Positions 560-31,975 of a DNA stretch of 64,000 nt are shown piece after piece; the stretch's first letter is position 1, and every line of letters starts with the position of its first letter. The position numbers and the translations under genes were made by a program. The notes beneath the pieces were generated by a model. It made no database searches, was not told where the DNA came from, and saw nothing but the letters and a program-made list of their open reading frames with translations. Source of the stretch: Macrostomum lignano (taxonomy: Eukaryota); NCBI GenBank assembly GCA_002269645.1, contig NIVC01000080.1, forward strand, positions 186,001 through 250,000, read 5' to 3'.

Positions 560-960
560 CAGAAGAGAGAAGAGATCAGATAGGAGAGATAAAAGAGGAG
601 AAAGGAGAGATGAGAGAGCAGAGACGAGAAATGAGACAGTAGAGCTAGAACAGAGGAGAGAGGAGAGGGAAGAGATTATAGAGACGAGTGGAGAAAGAAG
701 AGAAATATGTGAGAGCAGACATGAGAGACAATGGGAGAGAAGTGGAGTGAAGGAGAAAGGAGAATAAAGGGGGAGAATCGAGAGGACAGGAAGAGAGGGG
801 AGGTGAAAGAGTAAAGGGGAGAAAGTTGAGAGAAGAGTTGGGAAAAAAGAGGAGAGATGTTAAAGGAGAGTACAGATAAGAGATGAGAGAGAGGAGATAA
901 GACAAGAAATAAATAATAGGAGAGAGGGTCAAGATGATAGAGGAGAGAGAATAGAGAATT
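560..960. repeat. GA-rich low-complexity tract
   Basis: Purine-only runs (gagaga/agaggag). ORFs 534-767, 645-1001 and 676-966 are compositional artefacts of this tract. Confidence 0.85.
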
Positions 961-1141
961 TTGCACTGACCTACGAGGTGCAAAAAAACACGAGAAATCA
1001 AACTGAAATGTGCTAATTCTAACAGTCCTAGACTTCCATTGTTCCTACAAAATTTTAAACAGCGGGGCAGGACCTCCTGCGGGGCAGACCCATAGAAATT
1101 TTTCCGGTTTCCAAGATAAATATTGACTTATAGGGAATAAA

Positions 1142-2392
1142 CAGTGTTGGGCAAGTTACTCAAAAAAAGTAACTTGCGTTACTGTAACTTAAGTTACCAA
1201 TTTTTAAAAAGTAACTTACGTTAGCCTAGTAACTTTAGACAAAAACCCCGGTAACTTTTAAGTTACTGTCCGTTACTCACTTCCGTTACCCATGTTATTA
1301 ACAAAATTTTCTGCTTTTTTCACATTGCACATTTTTTTCACACTGTTTTTACCGAAATTTGCCATTGGGCATTGGGATTAACCGATTAACAGACAGAGAC
1401 AGCAATTGGCGACACGATGTGAGGCAAGTAGAAGGACCGATGGGCAATGGCAATCAATAATTAAAATTATAAATGATAAAATAAACGAATATCAATAATT
1501 CAATAAAGTAAAATAAATAACTGTATAAAATGGTGTAGTGTACTGCAGTGCCAGCGGAGGGACTTGTGGAGGCTACAGATGAATTTCTTTCTTTGGTTGT
1601 TTGTTTGAATCAAACTTGAAAATTTTTAGTAACTTGAAAATGGAAACGTATGAAACATTCGCCGACACCCACTCAGACACTTCTACAGACACTTCAGTTT
1701 CTGTCATACGAATCGTAGGAACAAGCATTAAATTTGTTTATTCCTTACAAACTACCAGTAAACTGCTTTATTTTAAGCTTTTTTTGCTTTATTTTATTAA
1801 ATCTGAATCATGAAATTTGTTATTCTGCATAGATTCTCTTCACGTGAAGAAGAATGTTAAATTTGTCCAGGACACTTCCTAATTCATATTTAATAAAATA
1901 AAGCAAAAAAAGCCCAAAATAAAGCAGTTTACTGGTAGTTTGTAAGGAATAAACAAATTTAATGCTTGTTCCTACGATTCGTACGACAGAAACTAAAGTG
2001 TCTGTAGAAGCGTCTGAACAAGTGTCGGCGAATGTTTCATACGTAAATGAAAGGCAAAAATATTTTACTGAAATTATAACAAAGCAAAACATGTTTCAAG
2101 TATTTCTTCATTAATTAAAGCGCAATACCAAATGATACTATTCACTTAATTTTGAATTTAGGAATGAAAAATGCAAAAACATGTGACAACCGGCGTAATA
2201 GCTAAGCATTTCAGTTTTAAATTTAAATATTGCGATTGTTGCAAAGTAACTGTAACGGACTTCTGAAATTTGAGTAACTTACCGTTACTCCGTTACTAAA
2301 ATAAAAAAGTAACTTGCGTAAGGAACGCTTTACGAAAAAGTAACTTGCGTTACCATTTGCAAGTTACTCGGTAACGGAAGTGCCCAACACTG
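1142..2392. mobile_element. Non-autonomous hAT-type DNA transposon (1.25 kb)
   Basis: TIRs CAGTGTTGGGCA...TGCCCAACACTG. Exact 8-bp TSD GGAATAAA at 1134-1141 and 2393-2400. Repeated subterminal GTAAC/GTTAC motifs at both ends. No transposase ORF. Confidence 0.9.
1646..2044. repeat. Internal inverted repeat (arms of about 160 bp, spacer of about 75 bp)
   Basis: 1646-~1806 is the near-perfect reverse complement of ~1882-2044. This explains the mirror ORFs 1601-1813(+) and 1820-2092(-). Confidence 0.9.
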
Positions 2393-2506: not shown

Positions 2507-4465
2507 GTAAGTGAACTCCTACAATTCTGGCAAGTCAGCGTCAAAACTTTAAATATATAAACATCGCCACATGAGCACGGAGTCACAACATAGTTTGAAT
2601 ATAATGGAAAGCGCACGTAAATAAGCGAAAAGCGGTATCCAACGGGGCAACACGAGCAAACTTTCAATATGCTAATTGGGAGGGGATTAAGCAATCATGG
2701 GCTGACTACCATTCTGCCACTCAGCGGGGGTCGAACGGGAGACTAACTCCTAATAAATAAATTTTCTCAGTCCTATAATCTTTAATGGCATGACACGCGG
2801 CCTTAACACATGGGGGCTCCAAGGCCTCCACGCTCCTTCCAGTGATTTTTTTAGAATAGTCTTTGGCTCTTAGCAGACAGTGCACTGCCCCCATCTACCA
2901 GATGTGTGGGCACATTCTCGATTAGATATTCTACAACAATATCTCTCCCGCGTTGCCTTCTAGCTGGCCTCAGCTGGTACAAGTCGGGCACTTTTTCAAA
3001 CAGAGGCTTCTTTCCTATGTTTGCTATCTATCTTTCCTATCTTTCCTTCTTTCCTAAGGGGAGAGAGTGGAGACCAGAGATAAATGAGAAGAGAGAGCAA
3101 AGATGAAAGAGAAGAGAGGTGAGGGAAGATCGACGAGAGAAGATGGGAGAGAGGAGATAGGAAAGAAGAGAAGAGAAGAGAGAGAGAGAAGAAAGAGAGA
3201 GAGAGAGGAAACAAAAGAGAAGATAGAAGTTTAAAAGGATCTGAGGGACATAGAGAGAGACAGGAGGCCAGAGATTTTGCCAATACATGATTTCGAAAGA
3301 CAAGTTTTTGTTTGAGTATGACTTCAGATTTTAGAACTAGATATAAGCTGAGCTGAGAGAGAAGATGAAAGTAGAGGCTGAGAGTAGAGAGAGGCTGAGA
3401 GCAGAGAGGGGCTGGGGATAGAGGTTGAGAGTGGATAGAGGCTGAGAGTAGAGAGAGGCTAAGAGTGGAGAGGCTGAGAATAGAGAGGTTGAGAGTAGAT
3501 AGAGGCTGAGAGTAGAGGTTGAGAGTAGAGAGGCTAGTTCACATTGTTCTCAATCCCATTCCACTATACATATAGTTTTTATCTAATGTGACTAAGCCAG
3601 GTGCTTTTAATGCAGGGGTTGGCAAACTTTTTACCTCGATTGAAAACCCAGCTCATGACTGCCCTTCTATAGTCCGCTTTGTTGGCCCCCAAAGCGAAGC
3701 GAGGAGTCCTGATGACAGCGGGCCAGAGGTGAGGAGAGAGGGTAAGGAATAGAAAAGAGAAATACAAGCATAGGATAAAGGAGAGGCGAAGGAATAAAGG
3801 AGAAGAGAGTTGATGAGAGGAGAGATTAAATACGAGCGGAGAGAGAGAAGGGAGATTAATGGACAGGAGAAAGGCGGGAAGGGAGATTAATGGAGAGGAG
3901 AAAGGCAGGAAGGAAGAAGAGAATGAAGAGGAAAAAGGAGATGAGAGCAAAGAGGTGAGGAGAGAGGAGAGAATAGAGATGAGGAGAGAGGAGAGGAGAG
4001 AGGTGAGGAGAGGATGAGATGAGAGAGGAGAGGGCAGAGATGAATACTAAATAAAGCAAGGGTGTAAGACCAAGATGGCCACACACCAAGATGGCCACAG
4101 CTGGGGTGGGGGTCACGGAAAATGACAGCTGGTTTTCTATTGGATAGCTTCGGGTGGGGAGATGTGGGGTTGCAATGGGGGTTTAGACAGGCAGTCAAAA
4201 TTTTATTAGTATATTGCAGGGCTAAAGACAAAAATGGTTACGAGTCTTAATTTCCTACTTATAGTAGGCCCCTAAGAGGTGTAAACATATAGCGTTTTAA
4301 ACAAATCTCTTCTTCATATAAAATGTGGTGTAGCTTTTTTCCATTTCTCTTATTGGTCGAGACTAATTTACTTGTTTAAAGGGATAAAAACTGGGTAAAT
4401 TTCATGCCCTGTTCAAAATTCATCTGTCTCATTCACTGACAGCAGTCTAAGCACTTAGATACAAA

Positions 4466-5060: not shown

Positions 5061-6206
5061 TTCTCGATTAGATATTCTACAACAATATCTCTCCCGCGTT
5101 GCCTTCTAGCTGGCCTCAGCTGGTACAAGTCGGGCACTTTTTCAAACAGAGGCTTCTTTCCTATGTTTGCTATCTATCTTTCCTATCTTTCCTTCTTTCC
5201 TAAGGGGAGAGAGTGGAGACCAGAGATAAATGAGAAGAGAGAGCAAAGATGAAAGAGAAGAGAGGTGAGGGAAGATCGACGAGAGAAGATGGGAGAGAGG
5301 AGATAGGAAAGAAGAGAAGAGAAGAGAGAGAGAGAAGAAAGAGAGAGAGAGAGGAAACAAAAGAGAAGATAGAAGTTTAAAAGGATCTGAGGGACATAGA
5401 GAGAGACAGGAGGCCAGAGATTTTGCCAATACATGATTTCGAAAGACAAGTTTTTGTTTGAGTATGACTTCAGATTTTAGAACTAGATATAAGCTGAGCT
5501 GAGAGAGAAGATGAAAGTAGAGGCTGAGAGTAGAGAGAGGCTGAGAGCAGAGAGGGGCTGGGGATAGAGGTTGAGAGTGGATAGAGGCTGAGAGTAGAGA
5601 GAGGCTAAGAGTGGAGAGGCTGAGAATAGAGAGGTTGAGAGTAGATAGAGGCTGAGAGTAGAGGTTGAGAGTAGAGAGGCTAGTTCACATTGTTCTCAAT
5701 CCCATTCCACTATACATATAGTTTTTATCTAATGTGACTAAGCCAGGTGCTTTTAATGCAGGGGTTGGCAAACTTTTTACCTCGATTGAAAACCCAGCTC
5801 ATGACTGCCCTTCTATAGTCCGCTTTGTTGGCCCCCAAAGCGAAGCGAGGAGTCCTGATGACAGCGGGCCAGAGGTGAGGAGAGAGGGTAAGGAATAGAA
5901 AAGAGAAATACAAGCATAGGATAAAGGAGAGGCGAAGGAATAAAGGAGAAGAGAGTTGATGAGAGGAGAGATTAAATACGAGCGGAGAGAGAGAAGGGAG
6001 ATTAATGGACAGGAGAAAGGCGGGAAGGGAGATTAATGGAGAGGAGAAAGGCAGGAAGGAAGAAGAGAATGAAGAGGAAAAAGGAGATGAGAGCAAAGAG
6101 GTGAGGAGAGAGGAGAGAATAGAGATGAGGAGAGAGGAGAGGAGAGAGGTGAGGAGAGGATGAGATGAGAGAGGAGAGGGCAGAGATGAATACTAAATAA
6201 AGCAAG

Positions 6207-8779
6207 GGTGTAAGACCAAGATGGCCACACACCAAGATGGCCACAGCTGGGGTGGGGGTCACGGAAAATGACAGCTGGTTTTCTATTGGATAGCTTCGGG
6301 TGGGGAGATGTGGGGTTGCAATGGGGGGTTTAGACAGGCAGTCAAAATTTTATTAGTATATTGCAGGGCTAAAGACAAAAATGGTTACGAGTCTTAATTT
6401 CCTACTTATAGTAGGCCCCTAAGAGGTGTAAACATATAGCGTTTTAAACAAATCTCTTCTTCATATAAAATGTGGTGTAGCTTTTTTCCATTTCTCTTAT
6501 TGGTCGAGACTAATTTACTTGTTTAAAGGGATAAAAACTGGGTAAATTTCATGCCCTGTTCAAAATTCATCTGTCTCATTCACTGACAGCAGTCTAAGCA
6601 CTTAGATACAAAATGGCAGGTGCATATCCATGTGTGGTCTGTCTGCAGCCAGTTTGCGATGGACAAGAAGCAATTGAGTGTTCTCAATGCTTGAATTGGC
6701 AGCACCGTGCATGTGATAGTCGCGTCACAATCGATCAGTATTCTGCAATGAGAAATGTTGGTGAGTTTTTCTGGCTTTGCAATCAATGCAATAGACGGGC
6801 TCCTGCAGGTAACTTAGCAGTGTCTCAAGCTGCAGATGCTGCAGTGGTACATGTACAAGCCCCGAATTCTGGACCAGGGGCTGTGTCCTCTGCCTGCTGA
6901 AAATCCAGAACCAGTGCATTTGATTCCGGCGCAAGCAGAAAATTTTCTTTACCAGTATCCAGATTTCAATGACCCTGATCCAGCTCTGGAAGAATCCATT
7001 CAAATTCCTCCAGCAGAGCTTGCACCGCCCTGCAGCCCACCTCCCCAGCCCTTTGAGATTCTTACAGGTGCAGGATGCAGTCACGGAAAAGACCTTCTAG
7101 TGCAGTATGTCCAACGAGACCTTGGCCATCTGATGGATGAAAAAACGTGGCGAAATGGCAACACGTACTATCGCTGCACTAAGCGTCTAAGAATGTGTGT
7201 GGGCACATTCTCGATTAGATATTCTACAACAATATCTCTCCCGCGTTGCCTTCTAGCTGGCCTCAGCTGGTACAAGTCGGGCACTTTTTCAAACAGAGGC
7301 TTCTTTCCTATGTTTGCTATCTATCTTTCCTATCTTTCCTTCTTTCCTAAGGGGAGAGAGTGGAGACCAGAGATAAATGAGAAGAGAGAGCAAAGATGAA
7401 AGAGAAGAGAGGTGAGGGAAGATCGACGAGAGAAGATGGGAGAGAGGAGATAGGAAAGAAGAGAAGAGAAGAGAGAGAGAGAAGAAAGAGAGAGAGAGAG
7501 GAAACAAAAGAGAAGATAGAAGTTTAAAAGGATCTGAGGGACATAGAGAGAGACAGGAGGCCAGAGATTTTGCCAATACATGATTTCGAAAGACAAGTTT
7601 TTGTTTGAGTATGACTTCAGATTTTAGAACTAGATATAAGCTGAGCTGAGAGAGAAGATGAAAGTAGAGGCTGAGAGTAGAGAGAGGCTGAGAGCAGAGA
7701 GGGGCTGGGGATAGAGGTTGAGAGTGGATAGAGGCTGAGAGTAGAGAGAGGCTAAGAGTGGAGAGGCTGAGAATAGAGAGGTTGAGAGTAGATAGAGGCT
7801 GAGAGTAGAGGTTGAGAGTAGAGAGGCTAGTTCACATTGTTCTCAATCCCATTCCACTATACATATAGTTTTTATCTAATGTGACTAAGCCAGGTGCTTT
7901 TAATGCAGGGGTTGGCAAACTTTTTACCTCGATTGAAAACCCAGCTCATGACTGCCCTTCTATAGTCCGCTTTGTTGGCCCCCAAAGCGAAGCGAGGAGT
8001 CCTGATGACAGCGGGCCAGAGGTGAGGAGAGAGGGTAAGGAATAGAAAAGAGAAATACAAGCATAGGATAAAGGAGAGGCGAAGGAATAAAGGAGAAGAG
8101 AGTTGATGAGAGGAGAGATTAAATACGAGCGGAGAGAGAGAAGGGAGATTAATGGACAGGAGAAAGGCGGGAAGGGAGATTAATGGAGAGGAGAAAGGCA
8201 GGAAGGAAGAAGAGAATGAAGAGGAAAAAGGAGATGAGAGCAAAGAGGTGAGGAGAGAGGAGAGAATAGAGATGAGGAGAGAGGAGAGGAGAGAGGTGAG
8301 GAGAGGATGAGATGAGAGAGGAGAGGGCAGAGATGAGAGAGAGAAAAGATTAGAGACGAGAGGGCAGAGATGAGAGAAAAGATCAGAGATAAGAGGGCAC
8401 TCCAATTTTTGCTTACTTCTATCATAACTAATACCTTTAACCTCTACCTTTAACTTTTAACATATACAAACAACACGTCAGTTTTAGTATATTGAAGATA
8501 GGTTTGAAACTATTATCCACGATCCAAAAACCAACTGTCTTGTGCTAGTAGTGCTACTAGCTTTAGTAGGTAGTAATACCTGCTGTAAAGGGAAGTGTTT
8601 TTTTTTTTACTTAGTCTAATTTCACTAACGAAATCTGTCTTCTCCGAGACTTGAAGCTAGGTCATACCCCACCCCAATCACAGCCAATAGGAAATGAGGA
8701 AATATATAGACCTATTCCTATCCAAGCAGCCATTCAAAGCTGTGGCCATCTTGGTGTGTGGCCATCTTGGTCATACGCC
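6207..8779 (+). mobile_element. Mutator-like (MULE) deletion derivative; its left end is repeated at 4061
   Basis: 42-bp TIR GGTGTAAGACCAAGATGGCCACACACCAAGATGGCCACAGCT, matched 40/42 by the reverse complement at 8738-8779. TSD AAAGCAAG at 6199-6206 and 8780-8787. Internal PHD and FLYWCH-like coding remnant. The MULE assignment is inferred from the GG termini and domain order; the DDE domain is absent. Confidence 0.7.
6613..7207 (+). pseudogene. PHD finger plus FLYWCH-like remnant (copy 2)
   Basis: Identical translation to 4466-5060. Confidence 0.65.
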
Positions 8780-11935: not shown

Positions 11936-12379
11936 AAAAAAGTTTGTAAATTTAAATAGAAAGCAAAGTAGTTTGTAGTTGAATAAGATAGTGATTGGCC
12001 GGCTGTTATAAGCATTGTTATGAACCCTGGCCTTTTCTCTATCCAATGACAATAATGTATGTTGTCTTATTGCAGTTTATTTATAATAAACAAAAGTTAA
12101 TATATAGGTCAAGTTGACAGTTGTTTGGTAGGGGTCTTTCAGATAATAATATTCTTAGATAGACTCATACATGCGCAACCTCCAAAATTTGGTCGGCCGT
12201 GCGACTTAGTTTTCGGCCAAAAATGCGACTTACATGAAAAAAACCTGAAAGCAAAATTAACGCAACTTTGGGTAAACGGCAGGAGTAACTATGACTGTCT
12301 TTATTAAGGCAAAATGCTTCGTCAGCTACTTAATACTACTTTGGTATTTATTTGGGTGGGCATTTTTGCAACTTACCTT

Positions 12380-14221
12380 ACTTACTTACTTACTACTGAC
12401 GGGGGGCGCAGGCGCCGCGAATAGGCCGCGAGGCCCCTATCGCAACCCCAAGGTAAAAGAGCACAAGGATTAGCCTTGGGGGTGCGCCCAGTCCCCGCCA
12501 GTAGTCGGCAGGTCCGCAGTGGAGGCATCGGCGACCCTCATCCGGCCGGAGTCCCGGACGAAGGCGCGGAGGTCTCGGATATTGTCCGCGGTGGTCAGCT
12601 CGTCCATCCGCTGGGGGTGGCCGAGGTATTTGTGCCGCGCCTTGTTGAAGTAAGGGCAGAAGGTGACGTGATGCTCCGCGGTCTCCTCTCCTATGCCACA
12701 GAAGGGACAGGTGGGAGGGCAACCGGTTTGCAACGATATATGTCTCTGGAAGAATCCGTGGCCGGTTAGGACCATGCACATCTCCCTGAGGTCGGTTCTG
12801 TTAAGCGAAATCAGATAATCAGAGACTTTCCTGTTCAGGTTAGGCATGGCAGAGCGGCTCTGCCTGTACTCGGTGCAGCTGTTCCAGTGGAGCTGGTGCT
12901 GCTGATGGAGCCACCTGTTGATATGGCGGGTGACTTGCGACCTGGGGGTGGGTAGCCTCATCAGACGGTGGTTGCCGTCTGGGTTGCTGCCCTCCTTGGC
13001 AAGAGAGTCCGCGAGCTCGTTGCCCAGGATGTTGCTGTGACCAGGTGTCCAGATAATTCTAATCCTGTTAAGGACTGAGAGAGATTGCACACTGCGGTGG
13101 CATTGAGATACTGTAGCAGCGGAGATATTCTCAGTGGTTAAGGCCTTAATAGCAGCTTGGCTATCAGTGTAGAAATTAATGTCAAAATTATTAATGTTCG
13201 CCTGAAACAGTTGCTGGGCACACTGCTCAATGGCGCAAATTTCAGCTTGGAAAACTGAGGTGTTCTCACCGAGGTGCAGACTTTCCTGGAGAAGCATCTT
13301 ACCCTCGTGGAAAATGGCAATACCCGCTCCAGCGCGGCCGTTGAACAGCGAGCCATCGGTGAAGCAGTGAATGCCCTGGCTGCGCCGGTTCACACCGACA
13401 TCCAGCGGAATGTTGTCTCGGCCAGGGATGGCGGTCTTGAAGCCCCTCCTGATGTTGAGGGCGGGAGGTCGACTATCCACATTGCCCAGGTCCATGTGGA
13501 TGTTGTTAAGGTCGCGGCGGACAAAGTCCATATGCGGGATTAATGTTTTCATTGGCATAAAGCCAGAGGGCGCGTTATTTAACGTTTTATCTCTGATAAG
13601 CCGGGAGGCAGACTTCATAGCCTCCGCCCTAATAAATAGGTGAAGCGGAGGTAGGTTAAGGATAGTGTTCAGCCCCTCGTAAGGGGTGGACGGGTACGCA
13701 CCTGTGATGGCACGGCAAATGCTGCCCTGAAGCTGGTACAGCCGCTGACGGGCGGCCTTCTGCTCCAGCACGCTAGTCCAGATGAGACTCGCGTATGTGA
13801 TACTGGGCCGGATGATGCCGGTATAAATCCAACGGACCGTTCTAGGCGAGAGGCCCCAAGTCGGCCCGATGGCTCTGCGCAGCTGGGCAAAGCAGCGTTT
13901 TGCCCGACCGATGACGTTATCAAGGTGCTTCGTCCAGCGCAGGTCATGCGTTAGCGTCACACCGAGGTATTTGACCTCCTTCTTGAAGGGGATGTTTCTG
14001 CCATAGACAGTGAGGTTTTTCATCTCCCATTTACGGCGCTTGGTGAAAACGACAGCGACAGTCTTAGTGACGCTGATTTTTAGGCCATGCTGTGTAGCCC
14101 AGTCGGCCGCCTTGTCGGCGAATTGCTGCATCAGGTTGCGCAGAGTGGCGGGGTCGGGTCCGCTGACGACCGCGGCAACGTCATCGGCGTAGCCCACCCT
14201 GGTGATACTGCTGATACGCCC
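12380..14221 (-). mobile_element. 5'-truncated non-LTR retrotransposon (RT plus RNase H; LOA/R1-like clade inferred)
   Basis: 23-bp TSD TGGGCATTTTTGCAACTTACCTT at 12357-12379 and 14222-14244. (TAAG)n tail on the minus strand at about 12380-12395. GC-rich intact ORF. Confidence 0.9.
12470..14221 (-). CDS. LINE ORF2 C-terminal part: RT (YADD, VKYLGV), thumb, RNase H and C-terminal CCHC-like motif
   Basis: Motifs GYADD, KYLGVTL, WGLSP, FTDGS...[43 protein letters not shown]. The N-terminal about 23 aa of the listed ORF are target/TSD-derived. Confidence 0.9.
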
Positions 14222-14739
14222 TGGGCATTTTTGCAACTTACCTTGGTTGGCCGCCAAATCAGTCGTCCATATCGGCCAACTATTGTGCATGTATGGTTTT
14301 GACTCTTGTCATTCCTAATCGTATTTGTACCCCATGTGGCACTAGAACAGTACACTTGACACGGAGTGTTTTAGGCATGATTGTACAGTGTAAGGTTGCA
14401 AAAGTGGGGAGTGGCAGAGATACATATGTATATATAGCTGTATGAGTATGATGGCACAAGCTAAGGCTAAGTCAATGCATGCAGCGATAAAAGCAGTCTG
14501 TAAAGCCAAATAGTGAAAGTTAACCTTAACTTATAGCACCTTGGCAGCCTATGCTGTCTGCCTGCATCTGATACGAGCATATAACTAAACTAGCAAGGCA
14601 ATTGGTTGTATTTACACTTACTTTCTGTACATGAATTGGTAAAGGTAAGGGCTTTTAAATGTTTTATTTATATAGTAATACTCATAAATCAATTTTATTT
14701 TATCACCAAAATCATATACTCGACTTAATCTTTCACAGA

Positions 14740-16329
14740 ATGATGTACAGCCTTAGTTGTCTTTGCCTACTGATTCTAAGTGGCATCCTAGCTATCAATG
14801 GTATTCTAGCTGAGAGTGAGTGCTCAATTGTTATAAATGAGTTAAATACTGATGAGCCGAATATTGGATCTCAAGAATTTTCAGAGTTCATTGAGCTGAA
14901 GAAAGTTTGTTCCACAACTGCAATGCTATTAGGATCAGTGCCAGTGAGACTCCGTGATTTTCTTCTGATTGGAGTTCAAGAATATAGCGGCGATTTTAGA
15001 CGACCTGTGGTTTCATTTTCTGCTGACTTCTATCGGTCCTCGGGCTTCAAAACGGACAGCAGTTTCTTTGTTATTGCATCAAAAGAGAAGCAGGAAGCAG
15101 CAGATATGTTTTTTACCAATACATCTATTGTGTATCAGGGAAAAACTAGACATGGGCTGCCAAGTTCCGCTCCTAGTGGATCATCGCAGTCATCCATCAT
15201 TGATTTTTTCAAGTCTGCTAGTAAGACAATTCCAACAGAACCAAATGCATTAAAGAATGGGAATGGTAAAAGTGCTATGGCCATTATTCTCTTGTATCAA
15301 CGAGACTTTTCTAGATCAGAATCGGACAGTTCAAGTTCCACAACTGCCAGTAGCATTGGAAAACTGCGACTAGCTAAAATGCATGCAACACAAAGAAGAC
15401 CTGTTTATGAAGATAAAATTATCATTGATAACTCATTAGCTGAAATTATTAGGAACAATGTGCATGACATGATCATCTATGCACGAAGTACACAAAATAA
15501 CAGGTGCACATTTTTTGAGTCCATTTATCATAGGCTAAGAGACAAGCCCAACTACATCTTAAAGCCAGCAAGAGAATGGGATGAACTTGGTCATGAGGAC
15601 TATTCAATAAACCGGTGCCCTGAATCCAGCAGTGAGTTACGAAAGCCTTTGCTTTTTACAAGGTGGAAACTTGGACAGTTGACTCCAGGTAGAGAAAATG
15701 ACTGCTCAGGTGCTCATTGGATTTTAGAGGACAATATTGAAGCCATCATAAATACACCTTCAAGAGAAGCAGGTACATTGGCAGACTCAGCATTAGCATC
15801 TGCTTCATCAGCAACAGAAAGAATCGAAATGCGACTAGCTCCTGCTCCAGCTCCATGTTCTGAAAGCTCACACCGTAGTGAATTGGCCAGGTCCTATGAA
15901 TTTTCAGAGCAAATAGCAGCTAATCGAGATCATGCTGTTCAAACTGCTGCTGCAGAAACTTCTATTTTTTGCTCTGCTGCAAATGTACAGGAAAGAAGAG
16001 AGTTGTTGGAGAATGACCAGCAAACAAGCAAACTACAAGTGGAAATTATTAGGCAAGTAAATATTCAAAGACAATCAACGAAACGATCACTTTGCCAAAG
16101 TCCTATTGTTGATTTAGATTCGAGCGACTCAAGGGGTTCAGGTGATGTTGAAATAGTACAAGTAAATACTGCAGAAGCAGGGCCATCGCAAAGAAAAATA
16201 CCATGCATAAGCACATCTGCAGACGCATGTCTAGCCACTTCAGCATCAAAGCCCTCGTCTTCCTCTATGATGGGCGAAAATATTGAAGTTTTCCCTAAAA
16301 AGGACTGGGAGGATACATCTGGTTTTTGA
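14740..16329 (+). CDS. Signal-peptide protein with a lamin-tail-like domain; 5' part of the hAT element gene
   Basis: Hydrophobic N-terminus MMYSLSCLCLLILSGILAINGILA-ES. Motifs IVINELNTDEP...EFIEL and D.SINRCP...LTPGRENDC resemble LTD-type extracellular domains (judged by eye). Ser-rich linker follows. Ends at TGA 16327-16329. Confidence 0.55.
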   Translation: MMYSLSCLCLLILSGILAINGILAESECSIVINELNTDEPNIGSQEFSEFIELKKVCSTTAMLLGSVPVRLRDFLLIGVQEYSGDFRRPVVSFSADFYRSSGFKTDSSFFVIASKEKQEAADMFFTNTSIVYQGKTRHGLPSSAPSGSSQSSIIDFFKSASKTIPTEPNALKNGNGKSAMAIILLYQRDFSRSESDSSSSTTASSIGKLRLAKMHATQRRPVYEDKIIIDNSLAEIIRNNVHDMIIYARSTQNNRCTFFESIYHRLRDKPNYILKPAREWDELGHEDYSINRCPESSSELRKPLLFTRWKLGQLTPGRENDCSGAHWILEDNIEAIINTPSREAGTLADSALASASSATERIEMRLAPAPAPCSESSHRSELARSYEFSEQIAANRDHAVQTAAAETSIFCSAANVQERRELLENDQQTSKLQVEIIRQVNIQRQSTKRSLCQSPIVDLDSSDSRGSGDVEIVQVNTAEAGPSQRKIPCISTSADACLATSASKPSSSSMMGENIEVFPKKDWEDTSGF

Positions 16330-18894
16330 GAGGAGTGGTTACATTCTTTGGAGATGCACCAGTCACAGTAAGTAAATGGAAACTGACGAACTATAAATTA
16401 ATGTATAGTGTACTGTGTATTGCACTTATTAGCATATTGCTTTTAGATACTCACAAATAGTCCAAATCCCAAAATATTCTCTAATTTGACCATTGCAGAT
16501 CATTTTCAAGAAAATTTGTGTCACAAGAAATGAAGACATGGTTTCAATATGTTCAAAACACCGAAGATCTATCAAGATCTGGAATACAATGTCGGATCTG
16601 CAGAAAATTTTTGAATGCACATAAGAAAAAGGAGACAAATCTAGAGAGCCAACGTAAGTTAACTTTTGCAACAGAACAAGGCTACATTCCCAAAGGTCAT
16701 GCAAAAGATAGCGTACGAAGAAAACTACAGGAACATTCATCAAATACACTTTACAGTGACGCCATAAAGTGGATGAAGGAAAAACATACTTCAGTTCTTG
16801 CAAAGCAACTCAAACAGATGAATGAGGCCGCTAGACTAGCTAAAACTAAACGAGATGAAATAACAGCCCGAGTTTTGACAACAGTTTATGCCGAAGTCAA
16901 ATCTAATATTCCATTCAGTGCTCATCCAAATATAATTGATTTACAAGTAAAAAATGGGTTGGATATGGGGAGCCATCATAAGCATCGCAAAAGTGCCGCA
17001 GCAATGGTGGAATCAATCAGTAATACAATGCATCGGACATTTGTGAATTACATTAAAAGTGCTGACAATCTTCCGATTTCTATTGTACTAGATACAACGT
17101 CTGATATTCATTCAAACAGCTACGTCATGATATACTTCAGAGTTCTTGAAAACAGCCAACCTTTGATGTTTTTTTATCGGTTTAAACGTCTGACTGAAGT
17201 AGAGACTGGACGAAGCATTTATGAACTTCTCATCCGTTTATTTTCGGATGACAAGCTAGAAGATGAAATCAAACGAAGGCTATGGGGGGTGACAACTGAT
17301 GGTGCATCCGTAAAGACAGGAAGTCGAGTGGGATTAATAAGTCAACTGAGGCCTTGGGCTAGCAAACAATTTTTTCAGCACCATTGTGCAGCGCATAAGT
17401 TAGAACTTTCAATCTATCATGCCTTTGCAATCTTCCCATTTATGCAACATCTCGATAAGAATATAAATTCTCTACACAAATTTTATATGAGCCACACTGT
17501 TAAACGTAAGGCATCTTTGGCACAAACTTCGGAAGCACTCAACTTGGTTTTCTATGAATTAAAAAGAATATATCGCATCAGGTGGGTTGCATCGGAAGTG
17601 TCTGCTCTTGATGTGATTCGAAAGTCGTACTACTTGCTTCTGACAAATTTAGAAAATATCAAATCACCTTCCTCAGGCTTTGATGACGAAAGTAAAGCAA
17701 CTGCCTCTGGATTATTGAAAACATTGCAAAATGTCCGGTATTATTCATTACATCTATTTCTCATGGACATTCTAAAATTACTGGAATTTGAGTCCTTGCA
17801 GTTTCAAAGAGCCAAGGGTACATTTATTGGCTTGCAAGAACGCCACACTAACCTTATCCATTCACTAGAAACCTTAAAAACGAACAATGGTCCTCGCATT
17901 GTGGACTTTTTGGCTTCCTGCAAGTGTCGTCGAGTTTTGGGAACTGCAGATGGATATCCGCAGCTGGAATACCATTCAGGATGTCACACAAGAGACCTAT
18001 CTTATTCTAACTTTGCTTGTCCTTCCGGCCCTGGAAGCAGCGATCCAACAGAGAGGTTTGAGTTGAAGCAACCAGGTTCTGCTGCAGACAGATCTCTAAG
18101 AAATAGATTATTTGATGCTAGTGGACGTGGCAGTGTTGTTGACATGGGAGCTTATCCAGCACTGGATGAGATTCGCAGTCGAATCATTGATAGCATAATT
18201 GATCAGCTGCGTAATTATTTTCCTGAGGATGACTACTCAATATTTAATGTGCTCAACCCAGTGTTATTGCCTAATGCTGAAACATTACATACTGTCTTTA
18301 CATACAGTTCGAGAATCATACCTCTTGCTAGACGGTTTGGAATGGAAGATGACAGCTCTGAATCTGAAACAGAGGACCATCTTTCTGATTCAGACTCTAG
18401 AGATGCAGATGCTTCAGAACGCGCTACAGAAAGGACAATCTCTGGTCAGTTCGGTCTACTCCTAAAAAGTTTGATCACTTCGCATAGTGTTGACTTCTGT
18501 GCCTACAAAGGCAAAGGTCCGGTGAAATTTTGGAGTCACTTTCTATCACTTTCTAGAGACAAGAACTGTTGAATGGCTGCCCAGAATAAAGAATCTAATT
18601 ATGGTTGTGTTAACTTTGCCAATATCATCAGCTGAGGCTGAAAGAGGGTTTTCTATCTATAAGCACATTGCCTATGACAGGAGAACACGCTTGGCACCAA
18701 AAACATTGGAGCATCTACTACGGATTCGAATAAATGGGCCTCCGCTGATGAAATTTAAGCCGGATATTTATGTCAATGATTGGCTGAAAAAACACTGGCG
18801 TTCTGATGCTCCTGGAGGTCAACGGCAAAAAGAATCCAACGTAGACGAGGAAATTAAAGATTCTGATTCTGATTTGCTAAGTGGACTATTTTGA
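16330..18894 (+). pseudogene. ZNF862-like hAT transposase, disrupted
   Basis: CRIC zinc finger, IVLDTTSD (D), TTDGAS (D), HHCAAH (CxxH), IRWVAS and LPISSAEAERGFS (E, dimerisation domain). Intron 16368-16498 (GTAAGT...TTGCAG). Frameshift from tandem duplication of TCACTTTCTA (18536-18555). Confidence 0.9.
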
Positions 18895-19244
18895 AAGTTT
18901 TTTATCAGTTTTAATCTGCTACAATTTTAATCAATTATTACAATGGTACATGCATAATCATTAAGACTACAGTTCTTCTAAGTTCATATATAAGACCGTT
19001 AGAATCTTGCAGTTTTAATTTGCTAATTAAATATTATTAAAAGTATGATTTGCAATTGTAATAGGGCTGAAAAATTACTGCTTATAAGTTATTCTATCCC
19101 TATTTCTATTCCTTAGCCATTTCTGGCTTCGTAATTCTTAATTTTTCAAATTGATGCGTTAATGCACACGTAGCCTACACCCTAGTAAGTGATACATTAA
19201 ATTCATCCTAAACTAATCCTATCCTAATAATCCTAAAGATGCTC

Positions 19245-20039
19245 TGCGACTTAACTCAGTCCTGCTGCGACTTACCTCGGCCCTGCTGCGACTTACTCGG
19301 TCCTGCTGCGACTTAGCTCGCCCTCAGTGCGACTTAGCTCTCGCTCGGTGCGACTTATTTTGCCCTCGGTGCGACTTAGCTCGGTCCTGCTGCAACTTAG
19401 TGCGACTTAGCTCTCGCTCGGTGCGACTTAGTTCGCCCTCGATGCGACTTAGCTCGGTCCTGCTGCGACTTAGCTCGCCCTCGGTGCGACTTAGCTCTCG
19501 CTCGGTGCGACTTAGCTCGCCCTCGGTGCGACTTAGCTCGGTCCTGTTGCGACTTAGTGCGACTTAGCTCTCGCTCGGTGCGACTTAGTTCGCCCTCGGT
19601 GCGACTTAGCTCGGTCCTGCTGCGACTTAGCTCGCCCTCGGTGCGACTTAGCTCGGTCCTGCTGCGACTTACTGCGACTTAGCTCTCGCTCGGTGCGACT
19701 TATTTTGCCCTCGGTGCGACTTAGCTCGCCCTTAGTGCGACTTAGCTCGGTCCTGCTGCGACATAGCTCGCCCTCAGTGCGACTTAGCTCTCGCTCGGTG
19801 CGACTTAGTTCGCCCTCGGTGCGACTTAGCTCGGTCCTGCTGCAACTTAGCTCGCCCTCGGTGCGACTTAGCTCGGTCCTGCTGCGACTTAGCTCTCGCT
19901 CGGTGCGACTTATTTTGCCCTCGGTGCGACTTAGCTCGCCCTCGATGCGACTTAGCTCGGTCCTGCTGCGACTTAGCTTGCCCTCGGTGCGACTTAGCTC
20001 GCCCTCGGTGCGACTTAGCTCGCCCTCGGTGCGACTTAC
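19245..20039. repeat. 21-bp subterminal tandem array (tgcgacttagctcgccctcgg), about 38 copies
   Basis: Seen directly. The core TGCGACTTA also occurs near both element ends (12201-12231, 20185). Confidence 0.95.
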
Positions 20040-21039
20040 CTTGTCTTCAGTGCTGCAACTTACAGCACTTACAACTCTTTTTGTGTTTTTCTCTTTCTCT
20101 TTGCTCCCTTTTTCTCGTTTTTTCCTTTTCCTTTCCCCTTTTTCGTCTTTTGTTTTTTCGTTTTTTTTGGCGGTTAATCAATTTTGCGACTTACTTGGTT
20201 GGCCGCCAAATCGGTCGGCCGGATCGGCCGACTCGGCCGACTGTTGCGCATGTATGGATAGACTCAATTTCAAAAATGAGTTTATTATCTTTACTTTAAA
20301 TATTTTTAAGATAAGCTATATAGTCCAGATATTTCCTTTCATTATACATATTAATACTGACATTGTAGTGAATATTTTGTAAGCAGATGAAATGATAGCA
20401 TTATATTTTTGCAGAAAAGAGAGTAGTAGACAAAATGACTATCAACCTTGATGTTATGATCCTCTTGATAAGGATTACCAATTAGATGTTGCAATAACTG
20501 TTTTCATATGCTATGGTTAGACCTATCTATAGCTAATAATTTTTTAGTAATTTGTTTTAGTGATACATTTTGGCAAATTTTTTTTTAATTTTAAGAAATA
20601 AAATATTTTGCTAATCTTATTCTATATGACTACATAGTATTTGAAGTCAATTGACAATCTAAATATATTTTTGTTAAAATATTTAAGACTAGTAGGCCCT
20701 AGTAGTATTAGAAAATTTCATTTATTTAGTCCTATAAATATGCTTTACCTAAAAGCTAGCAGCCAGCATAGAATTCTTGCATCTGATATATAAAATGGAA
20801 AATTGCATTTTTTGTATACCTAATTCCGTATTGAATCAAACAAAATTTAATAATTTTGTTAAAAACAAAATTTAGCATGATTTTTTGTTTCAGATTGCTA
20901 TTATCAATGTCAATAAATTCTTAGGTAGTAGACTTAGGCCTATTTTACTTAATAGATAGGATGATGATCTTATGCTTTTTAATTGGAATAATTTTTCAAT
21001 TTAAAAAATTGTAAATAATGAAATATAGTATAGGCCTAT

Positions 21040-21354
21040 CATACATGCGCAACAGTTGGCCAAGTCGGCCAATCTAGCCAAGTCCACTAATCTGGCCAAC
21101 CAATTTGGCAGCCAACCAAGGTAAGTTGCAAAAATGCCTACCCCAAAGAATATGGACATAGTACTAATTAGATGATGAAGCATTTAGCCCTCATAAGACA
21201 GTCATAGTTACTCCTACCATTTACCCAAAATTGCATTAATTTTGCTTTAGGGTTTCTTTCACAGGTAAGTCTCATATTTGGCCAAAAACTATGTTGAATT
21301 TTTGTTAAAACTAACTCACATGGCCGACTGAATTTTAGAGTTTGCACATGTATG
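21040..21354 (-). mobile_element. CATACATG-family hAT MITE
   Basis: Termini CATACATGCGCAAC...TTGCACATGTATG. TSD AGGCCTAT/AAGCCTAT (7/8). Aligns in reverse to 12166-12379 plus 14245-14295. Confidence 0.85.
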
Positions 21355-21817: not shown

Positions 21818-22093
21818 CATACATGTGTAACTGCTAGCTGACCTAGCTGATCTGGCCATTATAAATTGTAGTAAACCAAGAATAAGTTGTAAAAATACCT
21901 ACCCAAAAGAATATAGACATAGTACTAATTAGATGATGAGGCATTTAGCCTCAATAAGATAGTCATAATTACTCCTGTCATTTTTCCAAAATTGTGTTAA
22001 TTTTGCTTTAGGGTTTCTTTCACTGGTGAGTCTCATTTTTGTTCAAAAATAAGTTGCATGGCTAGTTTAAATCAAATGGGTTGCATATGTATG
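21818..22093 (-). mobile_element. CATACATG-family hAT MITE (more diverged)
   Basis: Termini CATACATGTGTAAC...TTGCATATGTATG. Exact TSD ATGAAACT at 21810-21817 and 22094-22101. Confidence 0.85.
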
Positions 22094-29563: not shown

Positions 29564-29649
29564 ACTAGTGAATGAAGACGCTGTCGTCTTCAAAGGTGGG
29601 ACGATGGTTTATATATTGTGTTTTTATCCTTTTATGGCTATGACATATG

Positions 29650-31975
29650 CCCCTGGCATTAGTTAGTCTAGTGGTCTAGTGGGGGGCTGGCCGCCCCCAC
29701 GCCCCTGGCATTAGTTAGTCTAGTGGTATAGTGGGGGGCTGGCCGCCCCCCACGCCCCTGGCATTAGTTAGTCTAGTGGTATAGTGGGGGCTCGCCGCCC
29801 CCACGCCCCTGGCATTAGTTAGTCTAGTGGTATAGTGGGGGCTGGCCGCCCCCACGCCCCTGGCATTAGTTAGTCTAGTGGTATAGTGGGGGGCTGGCCG
29901 CCCCCACGCCCCTGGCATTAGTTAGTCTAGTGGTATAGTGGGGGGCTGGCCGCCCCCCACGCCCCTGGCATTAGTTAGTCTAGTGGTATAGTGGGGGCTG
30001 GCCGCCCCCACGCCCCTGGCATTAGTTAGTCTAGTGGTATAGTGGGGGCTGGCCGCCCCCACGCTCCTGGCATTAGTTAGTCTAGTGGTATAGTGGGGGC
30101 TAGCCGCCCCCACGCCCCTGGCATTAGTTAGTCTAGTGGTATAGTGGGGGGCTGGCCGCCCCCCACGCCCCTGGCATTAGTTAGTCTAGTGGTATAGTGG
30201 GGGGCTGGCCGCCCCCACGCCCCTGGCATTAGTTAGTCTAGTGGTATAGTGGGGGCTAGCCGCCCCCACGCCCCTGGCATTAGTTCTTCTAGTGGTACGC
30301 TCGTATAGTGGGGGGGGCTTGCCGCCCCCCACGCCCCTGGCATTAGTTAGTCTAGTGGTATAGTGGGGGGCTGGCCGCCCCCACGCCCCTGGCATTAGTT
30401 AGTCTAGTGGTGTAGTGGGGGCTGGCCGCCCCCACGCCCCTGGCATTAGTTAGTCTAGTGGTATAGTGGGGGGCTGGCCGCCCCCCACGCCCCTGGCATT
30501 AGTTAGTCTAGTGGTATAGTGGGGGGCTGGCCGCCCCCCACGCCCCTGGCATTAGTTAGTCTAGTGGTATAGTGGGGGGCTGGCCGCCCCCACGCCCCTG
30601 GCATTAGTTAGTCTAGTGGTATAGTGGGGGGCTGGCCGCCCCCCACGCCCCTGGCATTAGTTAGTCTAGTGGTATAGTGGGGGCTGGCCGCCCCCCACGC
30701 CCCTGGCATTAGTTAGTCTAGTGGTATAGTGGGGGGCTGGCCGCCCCCACGCTCCTGGCATTAGTTAGTCTAGTGGTATAGTGGGGGGCTGGCCGCCCCC
30801 CGCCCCTGGCATTAGTTAGTCTAGTGGTATAGTAGGGGGCTGGCCGCCCCCACGCCCCTGGCATTAGTTAGTCTAGTGGTATAGTGGGGGCTGGCCGCCC
30901 CCCACGCCCCTGGCATTAGTTAGTCTAGTGGTATAGTGGGGGGCTAGCCGCCCCCCACGCCCCTGGCATTAGTTCTTCTAGTGGTACGCTCGTATAGTGG
31001 GGGGGGGCTTGCCGCCCCCACGCCCCTGGCATTAGTTAGTCTAGTGGTATAGTGGGGGCTGGCCGCCCCCACGCCCCTGGCATTAGTTAGTCTAGTGGTG
31101 TAGTGGGGGGCTGGCCGCCCCCCACGCCCCTGGCATTAGTTAGTCTAGTGGTATAGTGGGGGCTGGCCGCCCCCACGCCCCTGGCATTAGTTAGTCTAGT
31201 GGTATAGTGGGGGCTGGCCGCCCCCCACGCCCCTGGCATTAGTTAGTCTAGTGGTACGCTCGTATAGTGGGGGCTTGCCGCCCCCCACGCCCCTGGCATT
31301 AGTTAGTCTAGTGGTATAGTGGGGGGCTGGCCGCCCCCACGCCCCTGGCATTAGTTAGTCTAGTGGTATAGTGGGGGGCTGGCCGCCCCCCACACCCCTG
31401 GCATTAGTTAGTCTAGTGGTATAGTGGGGGCTAGCCGCCCCCCACGCCCCTGGCATTAGTTCTTCTAGTGGTACGCTCGTATAGTGGGGGGCTTGCCGCC
31501 CCCACGCCCCTGGCATTAGTTAGTCTAGTGGTATAGTGGGGGCTGGCCGCCCCCCACGCCCCTGGCATTAGTTAGTCTAGTGGTATAGTGGGGGGCTGGC
31601 CGCCCCCCACGCCCCTGGCATTAGTTAGTCTAGTGGTATAGTGGGGGCTGGCCGCCCCCCACGCCCCTGGCATTAGTTAGTCTAGTGGTATAGTGGGGGG
31701 CTGGCCGCCCCCCACGCCCCTGGCATTAGTTAGTCTTGTGGTATAGTAGGGGGCTAGCCGCCCCCCACGCCCCTGGCATTAGTTTTTCTAGTGGTATAGT
31801 GGGGGGCTGGCCGCCCCCCACGCCCCTGGCATTAGTTAGTCTAGTGGTATAGTGGTATAGTGGGGGCTAGCCGCCCCCCACGCCCCTGGCATTAGTTAGT
31901 CTAGTGGTATAGTGGGGGGCTGGCCGCCCCCCACGCCCCTGGCATTAGTTTTTCTAGTGGTATAGTGGGGGGCTG
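29650..31975. repeat. 51-53-bp minisatellite, about 44 copies, inside unit 1
   Basis: Unit gcccctggcattagttagtctagtggtatagtggggggctggccgccccccac. Confidence 0.95.

Follow-up and report, generated by a model that had tools for sequence, protein, structure and literature searches.

The question raised by this locus of Macrostomum lignano was whether an open reading frame with a signal-peptide-like start and an LTD-type domain belongs to the hAT transposase that follows it. The window, i.e. the whole 64,000-nucleotide stretch of contig NIVC01000080.1 that was analysed, very probably carries at 12166-20256 a dead autonomous-type hAT copy, in which the signal-like and LTD module is an ancestral, selected and clade-wide part of the transposase. 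Transposases act on nuclear DNA, and a conserved secretory-type leader combined with an extracellular-type domain is for that reason unexpected. Coordinates of the features are given in table 1.

Table 1. Features of the element and of its MITE derivatives in the window (window positions).
Feature	Position	Strand	Evidence or remark
Left target-site duplication GATAGACT	12158..12165	.	identical 8 bp at 20257-20264
Left TIR CATACATGCGCAAC, 14 bp	12166..12179	+	perfect reverse complement of 20243-20256; same ends in L007, L005
Left subterminal region, TGCGACTTAG-type motifs	12166..12379	+	contiguous with 14222 onward in L007
Nested 5'-truncated LINE fragment (RT with YADD motif; RNase H assigned by eye)	12380..14223	-	ORF 12470-14290
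Internal direct copy of the element's right end, ending CATGTATG	14224..14295	+	~86-88% identical to 20179-20233, inverted 21090-21138
Possible 5'-UTR intron or trans-splice acceptor directly before ATG (putative)	14645..14738	+	AAAG/GTAAG donor, CACAG/A acceptor
Signal-peptide-like hydrophobic N-terminus (aa 1-24)	14740..14811	+	maximum Kyte-Doolittle 9-residue mean 3.08
LTD-type domain, one complete unit (about aa 28-323), two insertions; C293, C322 invariant	14821..15708	+	hhalign, dN/dS, AF2
Ser/Ala-rich linker, low constraint	15709..16367	+	dN/dS 0.79 and 0.46
NLS-like basic patch QRKIPC in linker	16189-16206	+	RKRPC, KKKRVC, AKRPC in P0001, P0002, P0022
W-x-D-x-S/T-x-F motif at junction	16303-16326	+	conserved in intronless homologues
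Private nonsense TGA (ancestral CGA)	16327..16329	+	CGA in L007 and L001-3
Phase-2 intron, GTAAGT...CAG, 131 nt, predicted	16368..16498	+	donor position/phase same in L001, L004, L005
Transposase exon, stop 18892-18894	16499..18894	+	PF05699, conserved motifs in 11 homologues
Transposase zinc-finger region, CxxC...H	16590-	+	
Catalytic D741	17091-17093	+	by motif
Catalytic D810	17298-17300	+	by motif
CxxH (C839-H842)	17385-17396	+	by motif
RW (R904-W905)	17580-17585	+	by motif
Private 10-bp tandem duplication (frameshift)	18546..18555	+	absent from L007; removal restores frame into hAT dimerisation motif
Catalytic E1254	18640-18642	+	by motif
Internal array, ~38 copies of 21-bp repeat (TGCGACTTAGCTCGGTCCTGC), right subterminal region	19245..20060	+	also in L007 and in the diverged L005
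Right subterminal region and right TIR (20243-20256)	20179..20256	+	
Right target-site duplication GATAGACT	20257..20264	.	exact 8-bp pair with 12158-12165
MITE, same family, 315 bp, left end plus right end	21040..21354	-	TSD AGGCCTAT/AAGCCTAT (7/8)
Second MITE, more diverged, 276 bp	21818..22093	-	exact TSD ATGAAACT

The mobile unit was delimited by direct sequence reading and is larger than the interval 14740-18894 first assigned to it; the gene had been placed inside TIRs and an exact TSD, and both exist, but well outside that interval. The TIR pair matches at 14 of 14 positions (CATACATGCGCAAC and GTTGCGCATGTATG) and is common to the window copy and two other M. lignano insertions, L007 and L005, with exact 8-bp TSDs of their own (CTTGGGTT and AATTTAAA, respectively). 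Homology between the window and L007 stopped exactly at both TIRs, with unrelated flanks. Since all six CATACATG sites in the window came from this element family, and the same ends occur elsewhere with different TSDs, the TIRs and TSD are beyond chance. The CATGTATG at 14288-14295 was considered as an element end and rejected, being part of an internal copy of the right end just 5' of the gene; homology with L001 begins exactly at 14296, and 14224-14295 together with 12166-12379 makes up a complete MITE-like unit. The left subterminal region matches, in reverse, the MITEs at 21118-21294 and 21883-22062, and the left end has the TGCGACTTA motif in common with the 21-bp repeat array. A further M. 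lignano sequence, BOX15_Mlig001790g1, was 99% identical to the transposase and carries PF27073, and its 90% cluster holds 18 member sequences. With copies at unrelated loci and three TSD-flanked insertions, the element has been mobile. It would move by DDE-transposase cut-and-paste and has spawned the MITEs; its TSDs are 8 bp long, and its 14-bp TIRs are accompanied by subterminal repeats of the TGCGACTTA type.

The 8-bp TSDs, short TIRs, PF05699, DDE/CxxH/RW motifs and three independent insertions support the original prediction of a hAT element. The hAT dimerisation domain PF05699 was matched with E 2.6e-07 and 30.8 bits (cut-off 21.4 bits), and the Hermes C-terminus gave a weak match (E 0.016). 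Residues D741, D810, E1254, C839-H842 and R904-W905 fall into columns that are conserved in 11 homologues, their roles being assigned by motif and not by structure. The element resembles the hAT ZNF862/KIAA1586/FAM200-ZBED5 group (PF27073, DUF4371), with Hermes as reference, in its 8-bp TSDs, short TIRs, N-terminal zinc finger, DDE RNase-H-like core with CxxH and RW, C-terminal dimerisation domain, MITE derivatives and subterminal repeats, but adds a signal-peptide-like segment and an LTD-type domain of ~300 aa before the zinc finger. This N-terminal module was present in none of the 29 LTD-less transposase matches examined.

The closest named relatives of the transposase, ZNF862 and KIAA1586-like (24-27% identity), are domesticated hAT genes, and this, the introns of the gene and the purifying selection on its N-domain would suit a host-transposase fusion gene domesticated in the manner of ZNF862 or GTF2IRD2, and not a transposon. 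Such an origin is extremely improbable, as TIRs and exact TSDs were found at three unrelated loci, with MITE derivatives, and not at one immobile locus; the disabling mutations arose independently in each copy, the family as a whole retains the catalytic residues, and the purifying selection lies between element lineages, as expected for an active family. ZNF862, which carries KRAB PF01352, is a hAT-type host-transposase fusion. Formation of host-transposase fusion genes by exon capture is described by Cosby et al. (bioRxiv 10.1101/2020.05.07.082677). As presented there, such fusions (e.g. KRAB-ZNF862) have, like the element, a host-type domain in frame at the N-terminus of a hAT-type transposase; their transposase is immobilised in a host gene, whereas here the host-type domain sits in a mobile, multi-copy, TIR/TSD-bounded element with the catalytic residues kept.

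All predicted landmarks of the gene (ATG 14740, TGA 16327, GT 16368, AG 16498 and the 18546-18555 duplication) were recovered by direct reading. The frame runs from the ATG through 529 codons to the in-frame TGA at 16327-16329, and past it as EEWLHSLEMHQS up to CA/GTAAGT, with the GT at 16368-16369. The acceptor ...CATTGCAG has its AG at 16497-16498, and the exon restarts at 16499, where CA/A (Gln) and then SFSRKFVSQEMK are read in frame with the transposase ORF of 684 aa. Two tandem copies of TCACTTTCTA lie at 18536-18545 and 18546-18555; removal of one copy combined with splicing gave the single repaired ORF that had been proposed, 4014 nt encoding 1337 aa plus the stop at 18892-18894, with the TGA as sole internal stop. 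The intron is predicted to be spliced: its donor position and phase are kept in copies down to 52% identity, and the predicted product is colinear with intronless homologues. The element would have a single gene with two coding exons, encoding in order a signal-peptide-like segment, an LTD-type unit, a linker with an NLS-like patch, a zinc finger, the hAT core and the dimerisation domain. The donor and acceptor signals preceding the ATG also occur in L001, and in L004 an acceptor lies 25 nt 5' of its ATG.

Linkage of the LTD-type domain to hAT transposases, which had been suggested as a check, was recurrent: both domains were present in 50 of the best 150 matches in a library clustered at 50% identity, and 25 of these 50 were longer than 1000 aa. 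In intronless homologues with 36-45% identity the N-domain leads into the transposase in one ORF; the ORFs of P0005/L006 and P0022 span the junction without a break, and the order is the same in L008. Together with the kept donor position and phase, this read-through in the relatives indicates, as had been claimed, that one gene contains both the 5' ORF and the transposase and that the fusion is real and old. Two genes in one transposon, namely a secreted LTD 'cargo' ending at about 16327-16371 and a transposase starting at ATG 16530, with an incidental fusion and the 16498 acceptor perhaps used for SL trans-splicing, would explain how a signal peptide can go with an enzyme that works in the nucleus. 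The intron separates the two parts in all Macrostomum-lineage copies, its retention would stop translation one codon past the exon (CAG TAA), the window copy, L005 and L006 each have a Met (MKTWFQY) after the acceptor, and the linker is weakly constrained (dN/dS 0.79). This arrangement is nevertheless quite unlikely, given the uninterrupted ORF of the intronless relatives (P0005, P0022 and the 25 proteins of more than 1000 aa), an exon that ends in phase 2 with a conserved EEWLHSL.HQ reaching the donor and colinear with the intronless ORFs, and an internal Met at 16530 that is not conserved in P0022 (ARKTWLNY) or L008. Two products can also be reconciled with the single fused gene as alternative isoforms.

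As an alternative to decay, the TGA had been proposed to be a programmed stop or a readthrough site. This was not supported: the TGA arose by a private C>T change at a CpG, and the same copy is also frameshifted and LINE-inserted. The CGA sought at 16327 in other copies was found in L007 and L001-3, and K, Q or R-class residues occupy the site in other homologues. Because the other copies have CGA and are without the 10-bp duplication, the window copy is decayed and not recoded. The LINE fragment, whose boundaries are approximate and taken from BLAST ends, is likewise private to the window copy; in L007 both flanks abut. Inactivation of the window copy would have come from these three private lesions, i.e. 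CGA>TGA, the 10-bp duplication and the LINE insertion in the left arm, and it does not carry the intact transposase ORF of an autonomous active element. L007 has a 1-bp deletion, a 2-bp insertion, a 39-bp deletion and a catalytic E>K change at 18640, and L005 has a 5' deletion and stops. The search for an intact copy gave none: lesions are present in the window copy and in L005, L006 and L007, although some of these lesions could be assembly errors.

For the N-domain, predicted to be LTD-like, the profile matched the Branchiostoma protein P0041 (E 1.2e-69), which itself scores PF00932 at E 7.5e-95 and belongs to a cluster named 'LTD domain-containing protein'. Comparison by hhalign with PF00932-positive LTD units gave 99.7%, E 2.3e-25, over 182 columns (template columns 2-184 of 184). 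At the profile level, and by way of PF00932-positive proteins, these matches establish homology to the LTD family. In the direct searches proposed with PF00932 and Foldseek, the window protein had no PF00932 match at E<=1, and no lamin tail was retrieved from the PDB. Of the 45 N-domains of the family, three were matched by PF00932, the best at E 0.0011 and none reaching the gathering threshold of 34.3 bits, and a relative, P0024, gave a direct sub-threshold match (E 0.0045, profile positions 5-44). The AF2 model of the N-domain (pLDDT 82, pTM 0.85) is mostly beta-strand, with an N-terminal helix (aa 2-25) standing apart; Foldseek of this model against the PDB returned nothing at E<=0.001, with Ig V-domains at E ~0.02. 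Compared with the canonical lamin tail (PF00932; nuclear lamins and bacterial secreted LTD proteins), the element's domain is linked transitively but lies below the Pfam threshold, is without a significant match to any solved chain and forms a unit of about 200-300 aa against a 109-position model. The suggested dN/dS analysis per domain gave 0.21 (versus L001) and 0.16 (versus L004) for aa 27-340, i.e. purifying selection, and 0.79 and 0.46 for the linker.

The nearest non-transposon relatives of the N-module are surface proteins from amphioxus and Ptychodera that combine a signal peptide with LTD repeats (B. floridae LOC118427361/C3ZWX4 'LTD domain-containing protein', B. lanceolatum Hypp7364 and Ptychodera flava XP_070578841). 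Like the element, these extracellular deuterostome proteins have a signal-like N-terminus directly before an LTD unit, the landmarks VVINELNxDxP, EFIEL, D.S..RC and TPG..NDC and both invariant cysteines, with the hhalign match extending across the whole unit. They differ in having 8-12 tandem units, Pro/Thr-rich linkers, a C-terminal TM segment in one case and no transposase, whereas in the transposon one unit stands alone, interrupted by two insertions at about aa 130-175 and 190-225 and bearing a further three conserved cysteines. The N-domain probably folds as in these relatives, because the two invariant cysteines are common to both. Capture of an extracellular module, as originally predicted, fits these results, since the nearest non-transposon relatives are extracellular signal-peptide plus LTD-repeat proteins; the module would most probably derive from the 5' end of a gene for such a protein. 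A capture peculiar to this element was rejected, the module being the ancestral state of a large clade. It would be neither cargo nor specific to this copy; in a large hAT clade it would belong to the transposase ancestrally and be maintained by selection.

As for the predicted signal peptide, hydropathy showed a signal-peptide-like N-terminus across the family: a Kyte-Doolittle 9-residue mean >=2.0 was reached by 47 of 56 family N-termini, compared with 4 of 28 LTD-less transposases and 8% of internal windows. In the window protein aa 1-24 is the only TM-like stretch, with a second such segment absent by hydropathy. In the amphioxus relative a matching segment immediately precedes the first LTD unit. 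The N-terminus may work as an ER signal. How a transposase could carry a functional signal peptide is biologically puzzling, because a fully translocated protein with no stop-transfer segment could not reach DNA.

Alternatively, the hydrophobic N-terminus is not secretory but a membrane tether or buried helix, and the whole protein is nuclear, with the LTD binding chromatin, DNA or lamina. Lamin tails bind DNA and chromatin, and LTDs occur in bacterial extracellular nucleases. The putative Ig-like beta-sandwich fold class, with a separate N-terminal helix in the AF2 model, the NLS-like patch in the linker, the need of transposases to reach DNA and some fusion proteins without a hydrophobic start (P0034, P0035, P0043, P0118 and P0145) agree with a nuclear protein. 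We regard this explanation as conceivable, though doubtful: the nearest domain relatives are extracellular repeat proteins with the same signal-like start and, in one case, a C-terminal TM segment, both of their invariant cysteines are also invariant here, and the N-terminus varies in sequence while its character and position are kept in 84% of members, as in signal peptides. If the leader is signal-like in function, a working guess for nuclear access is that only part of the protein would be translocated, or that an N-terminally shorter isoform would be the nuclear transposase and the module accessory or regulatory. That the signal peptide is functional, that the LTD-transposase enters the ER/secretory pathway and that this hAT clade routes or regulates its transposase through the endomembrane system is rather unlikely. 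If true, it could take the form of perinuclear/ER sequestration with regulated release, or of cell-to-cell export and uptake, e.g. from soma to germline, and would be a trafficking mode new for any DNA transposase; to our knowledge, endomembrane trafficking is not known for any of them.

No description of the signal-like plus LTD hAT transposase design or of its clade was found in the literature (Repbase and Dfam were outside the scope of the search). The family is nearly absent from annotated proteomes and is missed by standard annotation, because its matches lie in raw assemblies (Logan, ENA and JGI) and Pfam is blind to its domain. As the module is clade-wide and under purifying selection, and not a one-off chimera, it must help the element or be tolerated by it. 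This raises the questions of how the enzyme reaches the nucleus, and of whether the module limits, targets or transmits transposase activity. It also raises the question of whether host exons can be taken up by transposons and retained as working parts of their enzyme, the mirror image of hosts capturing transposases, and the tractability of M. lignano for transgenesis makes tests feasible.

The mobile element was delimited by comparison with L007, another M. lignano insertion (97.6% nucleotide identity), whose homology with the window ran from 12165/6 to 20256 and ended on both sides there. The window element ends in CATACATGCGCAAC and its perfect complement, with an exact GATAGACT duplication outside; the same ends were found in L007 (flanking duplication CTTGGGTT) and in L005, a diverged copy at 72% nucleotide identity (flanking duplication AATTTAAA). 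Because the limits of homology coincide with the terminal inverted repeats and the exact flanking duplication, and the ends recur in both copies, the element is assigned to 12166–20256, giving a length of 8091 bp in the window versus 5895 bp in L007. Within this interval, 12380–14223 had no counterpart in L007. These additional 1.8 kb consist of a LINE fragment, 5'-truncated and on the minus strand (ORF 12470–14290), which is nested in the left arm and contains a reverse transcriptase with a YADD motif and, by eye, an RNase H-like portion together with a Cys/His region at the C-terminus. CATGTATG at 14288 was discarded as an element end because it is a duplicate of the right end inside the element (true ends 12166 and 20256), and no TIR partner was found for the 14296 boundary (GTTTTGAC...) with up to three mismatches allowed. 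The five TSDs showed no clear pattern when typed against the Ac and Buster consensus. Since the transposase part shares 99% identity with the annotated protein BOX15_Mlig001790g1 and a further paralogue, at 70%, likewise comes from M. lignano, the host is M. lignano or a very close relative.

The gene structure of the original prediction was recovered by direct sequence reading. An ATG is present at 14740, 529 codons precede the in-frame TGA at 16327, and the frame continues as EEWLHSLEMHQS to CA/GTAAGT, with the GT at 16368; the acceptor AG lies at 16497–16498 and is rejoined as CA/A followed by SFSRKFVSQEMK, matching the frame of the 684-aa transposase ORF. The 10-bp duplication consists of TCACTTTCTA in tandem at 18536–18555. 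With the intron spliced and one repeat removed, a single ORF of 4014 nt was obtained, encoding 1337 aa plus the stop at 18892–18894, in which TGA 16327 was the only internal stop. When the window ORFs were searched against Pfam, the sole match was hATC (PF05699; C-terminal dimerisation region; E 2.6e-07, above cut-off), and LTD gave no match at E<=1.

The TGA had been considered as a programmed stop or readthrough site, with CGA expected in other copies if it were decay. CGA was found at this position in L007 and in the Logan contigs L001-3, the latter reading ...SGFREEWLHSLEMHQSQ, which rules out programmed stop or readthrough; for the same reason the TGA is attributed to C>T at a CpG, private to this copy. 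The 10-bp duplication was absent from L007, which has lesions of its own: two deletions, of 39 bp and 1 bp, an insertion of 2 bp, and a G>A substitution at 18640 that converts the catalytic Glu codon, at its first position, to Lys (SSAEAERGFS to ...AKRGFS). BOX15_Mlig001790g1 therefore derives from a catalytically dead copy. L005 lacks aa 1–247 and contains stops. Separate damage to copies of an intact common ancestor is read as characteristic of a transposon family that was active until recently; part of the single-base indels could be sequencing errors of the older assembly.

That the 5' ORF and the transposase form one fused gene was upheld by the conserved donor and by intronless relatives. 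Within the Macrostomum lineage, codon position and phase of the donor were unchanged in L001 (92% identity), L005 (about 64–70% amino acid identity in the shared part; 72% nucleotide) and L004 (52% identity). Outside it the intron was absent and both parts lay in one ORF: P0005/L006 (36% identity) passed from the LTD part to the transposase across ...THQSIYVSNTWITSEMKVWLEY..., and P0022 (45% identity) was likewise continuous, while in L008 the two parts occupied adjacent ORFs in unchanged order. The predicted spliced junction aligned gap-free with the intronless proteins, and the D, D, E, CxxH and RW motifs were kept throughout the aligned homologues. An exhaustive profile search of a library holding one representative per 50%-identity cluster returned 947 representatives at E<=0.001, 117 of them at E<=1e-30. 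Among the 150 best profile matches, 50 carried N-domain and transposase in one protein; half of these (25/50) exceeded 1000 aa, and 23 of the 25 covered most of the transposase, about half also covering the whole N-domain. Values of dN/dS for the N-domain (aa 27–340) were 0.21 against L001 and 0.16 against L004, denoting purifying selection, and the linker was much freer (0.79 and 0.46, respectively). On these sequence comparisons the fusion is judged to be real, and this architecture goes back to the ancestor of a large clade. Two independent genes were ranked far below this single fusion gene as an explanation, and a domesticated gene was also ranked below it. Upstream of the intronless homologue, the metagenome contig L006 carries a Tc1/mariner-like transposase remnant (735–1328, minus strand), and L006 is accordingly classed as a repeat-rich eukaryotic contig. 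No complete element of another lineage was confirmed in scans of metagenome contigs.

The claimed likeness of the N-domain to LTD was borne out by sequence profiles. Only 3 of 45 family N-domains matched in Pfam, the best (P0024, E 0.0045) below threshold. The family profile matched P0041, an extracellular LTD-repeat protein of Branchiostoma floridae, at E 1.2e-69 over repeated stretches; P0041 itself matches PF00932 (E 7.5e-95), and its cluster holds the 'LTD domain-containing protein' C3ZWX4. The amphioxus and Ptychodera LTD-repeat proteins have a signal-like start followed by 8–12 units of about 190–210 aa, separated by Pro/Thr-rich linkers and each spanning VVINELNADNP...EFIELYN to D.S.SRC...TPG..NNC, and one has a C-terminal transmembrane segment; on these features they are classed as extracellular. 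Profile–profile comparison of 45 transposon N-domains with 16 extracellular units gave 99.7% probability (E 2.3e-25, 182 columns) and covered the whole unit, corresponding to aa 29–323 of the window protein with two insertions. The cysteines invariant in the extracellular units (SRC, NDC) correspond to C293 and C322, which are also invariant in the transposon family. An initial AF2 model built on 9 sequences was of low quality (pLDDT 59) and uninformative in Foldseek; a second, from 45 sequences, was confident (pLDDT 82, pTM 0.85) and mostly beta-strand, and its only matches in Foldseek against the PDB, Ig V-domains at E about 0.02, were not significant. LTD homology is therefore founded on the sequence profiles. 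Kinship with FGF1, the sole match of a PDB sequence-profile search (E about 0.6), was dismissed as chance; the non-significant resemblance to the FGF1 core involves aa 233–296 (window about 15436–15627; DMIIYARSTQNNRCTFFES versus GLLYGSQTPNEECLFLER).

Of the claimed signal peptide, a signal-like hydrophobic N-terminus across the family was retained, as judged by hydropathy only (9-residue Kyte–Doolittle mean >=2.0, in members with at least 15 residues ahead of the VVINE motif). A hydrophobic core lay directly upstream of this motif in 47/56 family members and in 9/12 fusion proteins (seven distinct sequences and two near-identical cluster members), compared by the same measure with 4/28 N-termini of LTD-less transposase relatives and 8% of random internal windows. 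The window protein reached 3.08 and had no second TM-like stretch by hydropathy in its 1337 aa. Past the core the flank is acidic (AESEC), which would fit a translocated C-terminal side. The segment varies freely in sequence while keeping its character and position, the same pattern as in signal peptides. The linker carries an NLS-like basic patch (RKRPC in P0001, KKKRVC in P0002, AKRPC in P0022, RKIPC in the window).

Two MITEs are built from the ends of the element (table below), and every one of the six CATACATG sites in the window is part of this family. In the right subterminal region, at 19245–20060, a 21-bp repeat (TGCGACTTAGCTCGGTCCTGC) is present in about 38 copies; arrays of this repeat also occur in L007 (about 12300–12800) and L005 (12432–13143) and vary in length among copies. 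Its TGCGACTTA motif recurs in the left end and the array resembles the subterminal TGCAACTTACCTTGGTTGGCC; these motifs may be candidate, possibly amplified, transposase-binding sites. Because the right end is repeated internally, in direct orientation, at 14224–14295, the left 290 bp (12166–12379 plus 14224–14295) form a complete MITE-like unit by themselves, around which no TSD was found. Homology with the 92% copy L001 starts exactly at 14296, and the L001 sequence upstream (L001 1–146) is unrelated. This suggests that the left end of the window/L007 subfamily was gained by a MITE joining a 5'-truncated element.

Elsewhere in the window, a segment of at least 234 bp occurs three times about 2147 bp apart (3063–3296, 5209–5442, 7356–7589), each followed by the same GA-rich 47/64-bp microarray, and looks like a long-period tandem repeat; it is 73% similar to L005 16303–16523, 3 kb downstream of the L005 element. 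The interval 26500–63400 is dense in satellites, and several of its long 'ORFs' fall within repeat arrays.

MITEs and satellite arrays in the window
Feature	Position	Composition	Remarks
MITE	21040-21354	built from element's left and right ends	8-bp TSDs; just downstream of element
MITE	21818-22093	built from element's left and right ends	8-bp TSDs; just downstream of element
Satellite	29649-31992	52-bp unit	
Satellite	about 34839, 38906, 42906	91-bp unit	
Satellite	46166-47239; 54941-57596	29-bp units	
Satellite	52613-53901	35-bp unit	

The element belongs to the hAT superfamily, having every defining feature that was tested; it moved as a unit, generated MITEs and encodes one fused SP-like/LTD/zinc-finger/DDE/hATC protein. 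The closest group to its transposase is that of ZNF862, KIAA1586 and FAM200-ZBED5 (24–27% identity), from which it differs by the N-terminal module. In a literature search no LTD or signal peptide linked to a hAT transposase was found, and a Repbase or Dfam consensus may exist; of 30 family representatives looked up in databases, the LTD-repeat proteins of amphioxus and Ptychodera alone had names, the transposon-type matches all being nameless. Transposition would proceed by ordinary hAT cut-and-paste. Access to the nucleus despite a putative ER signal might involve translocation that is partial or inefficient, a hydrophobic segment with some role other than secretion, or a shorter nuclear isoform made in Macrostomum from the internal AUG at 16530 or by trans-splicing at 16498; the Met at 16530 is not conserved in P0022 or L008. 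The window copy is an ordinary dead transposon and is not recoded. The interest lies in the architecture of the family, in which the module would have been taken from the 5' end of a gene encoding an extracellular LTD-repeat protein and kept through serving the element.
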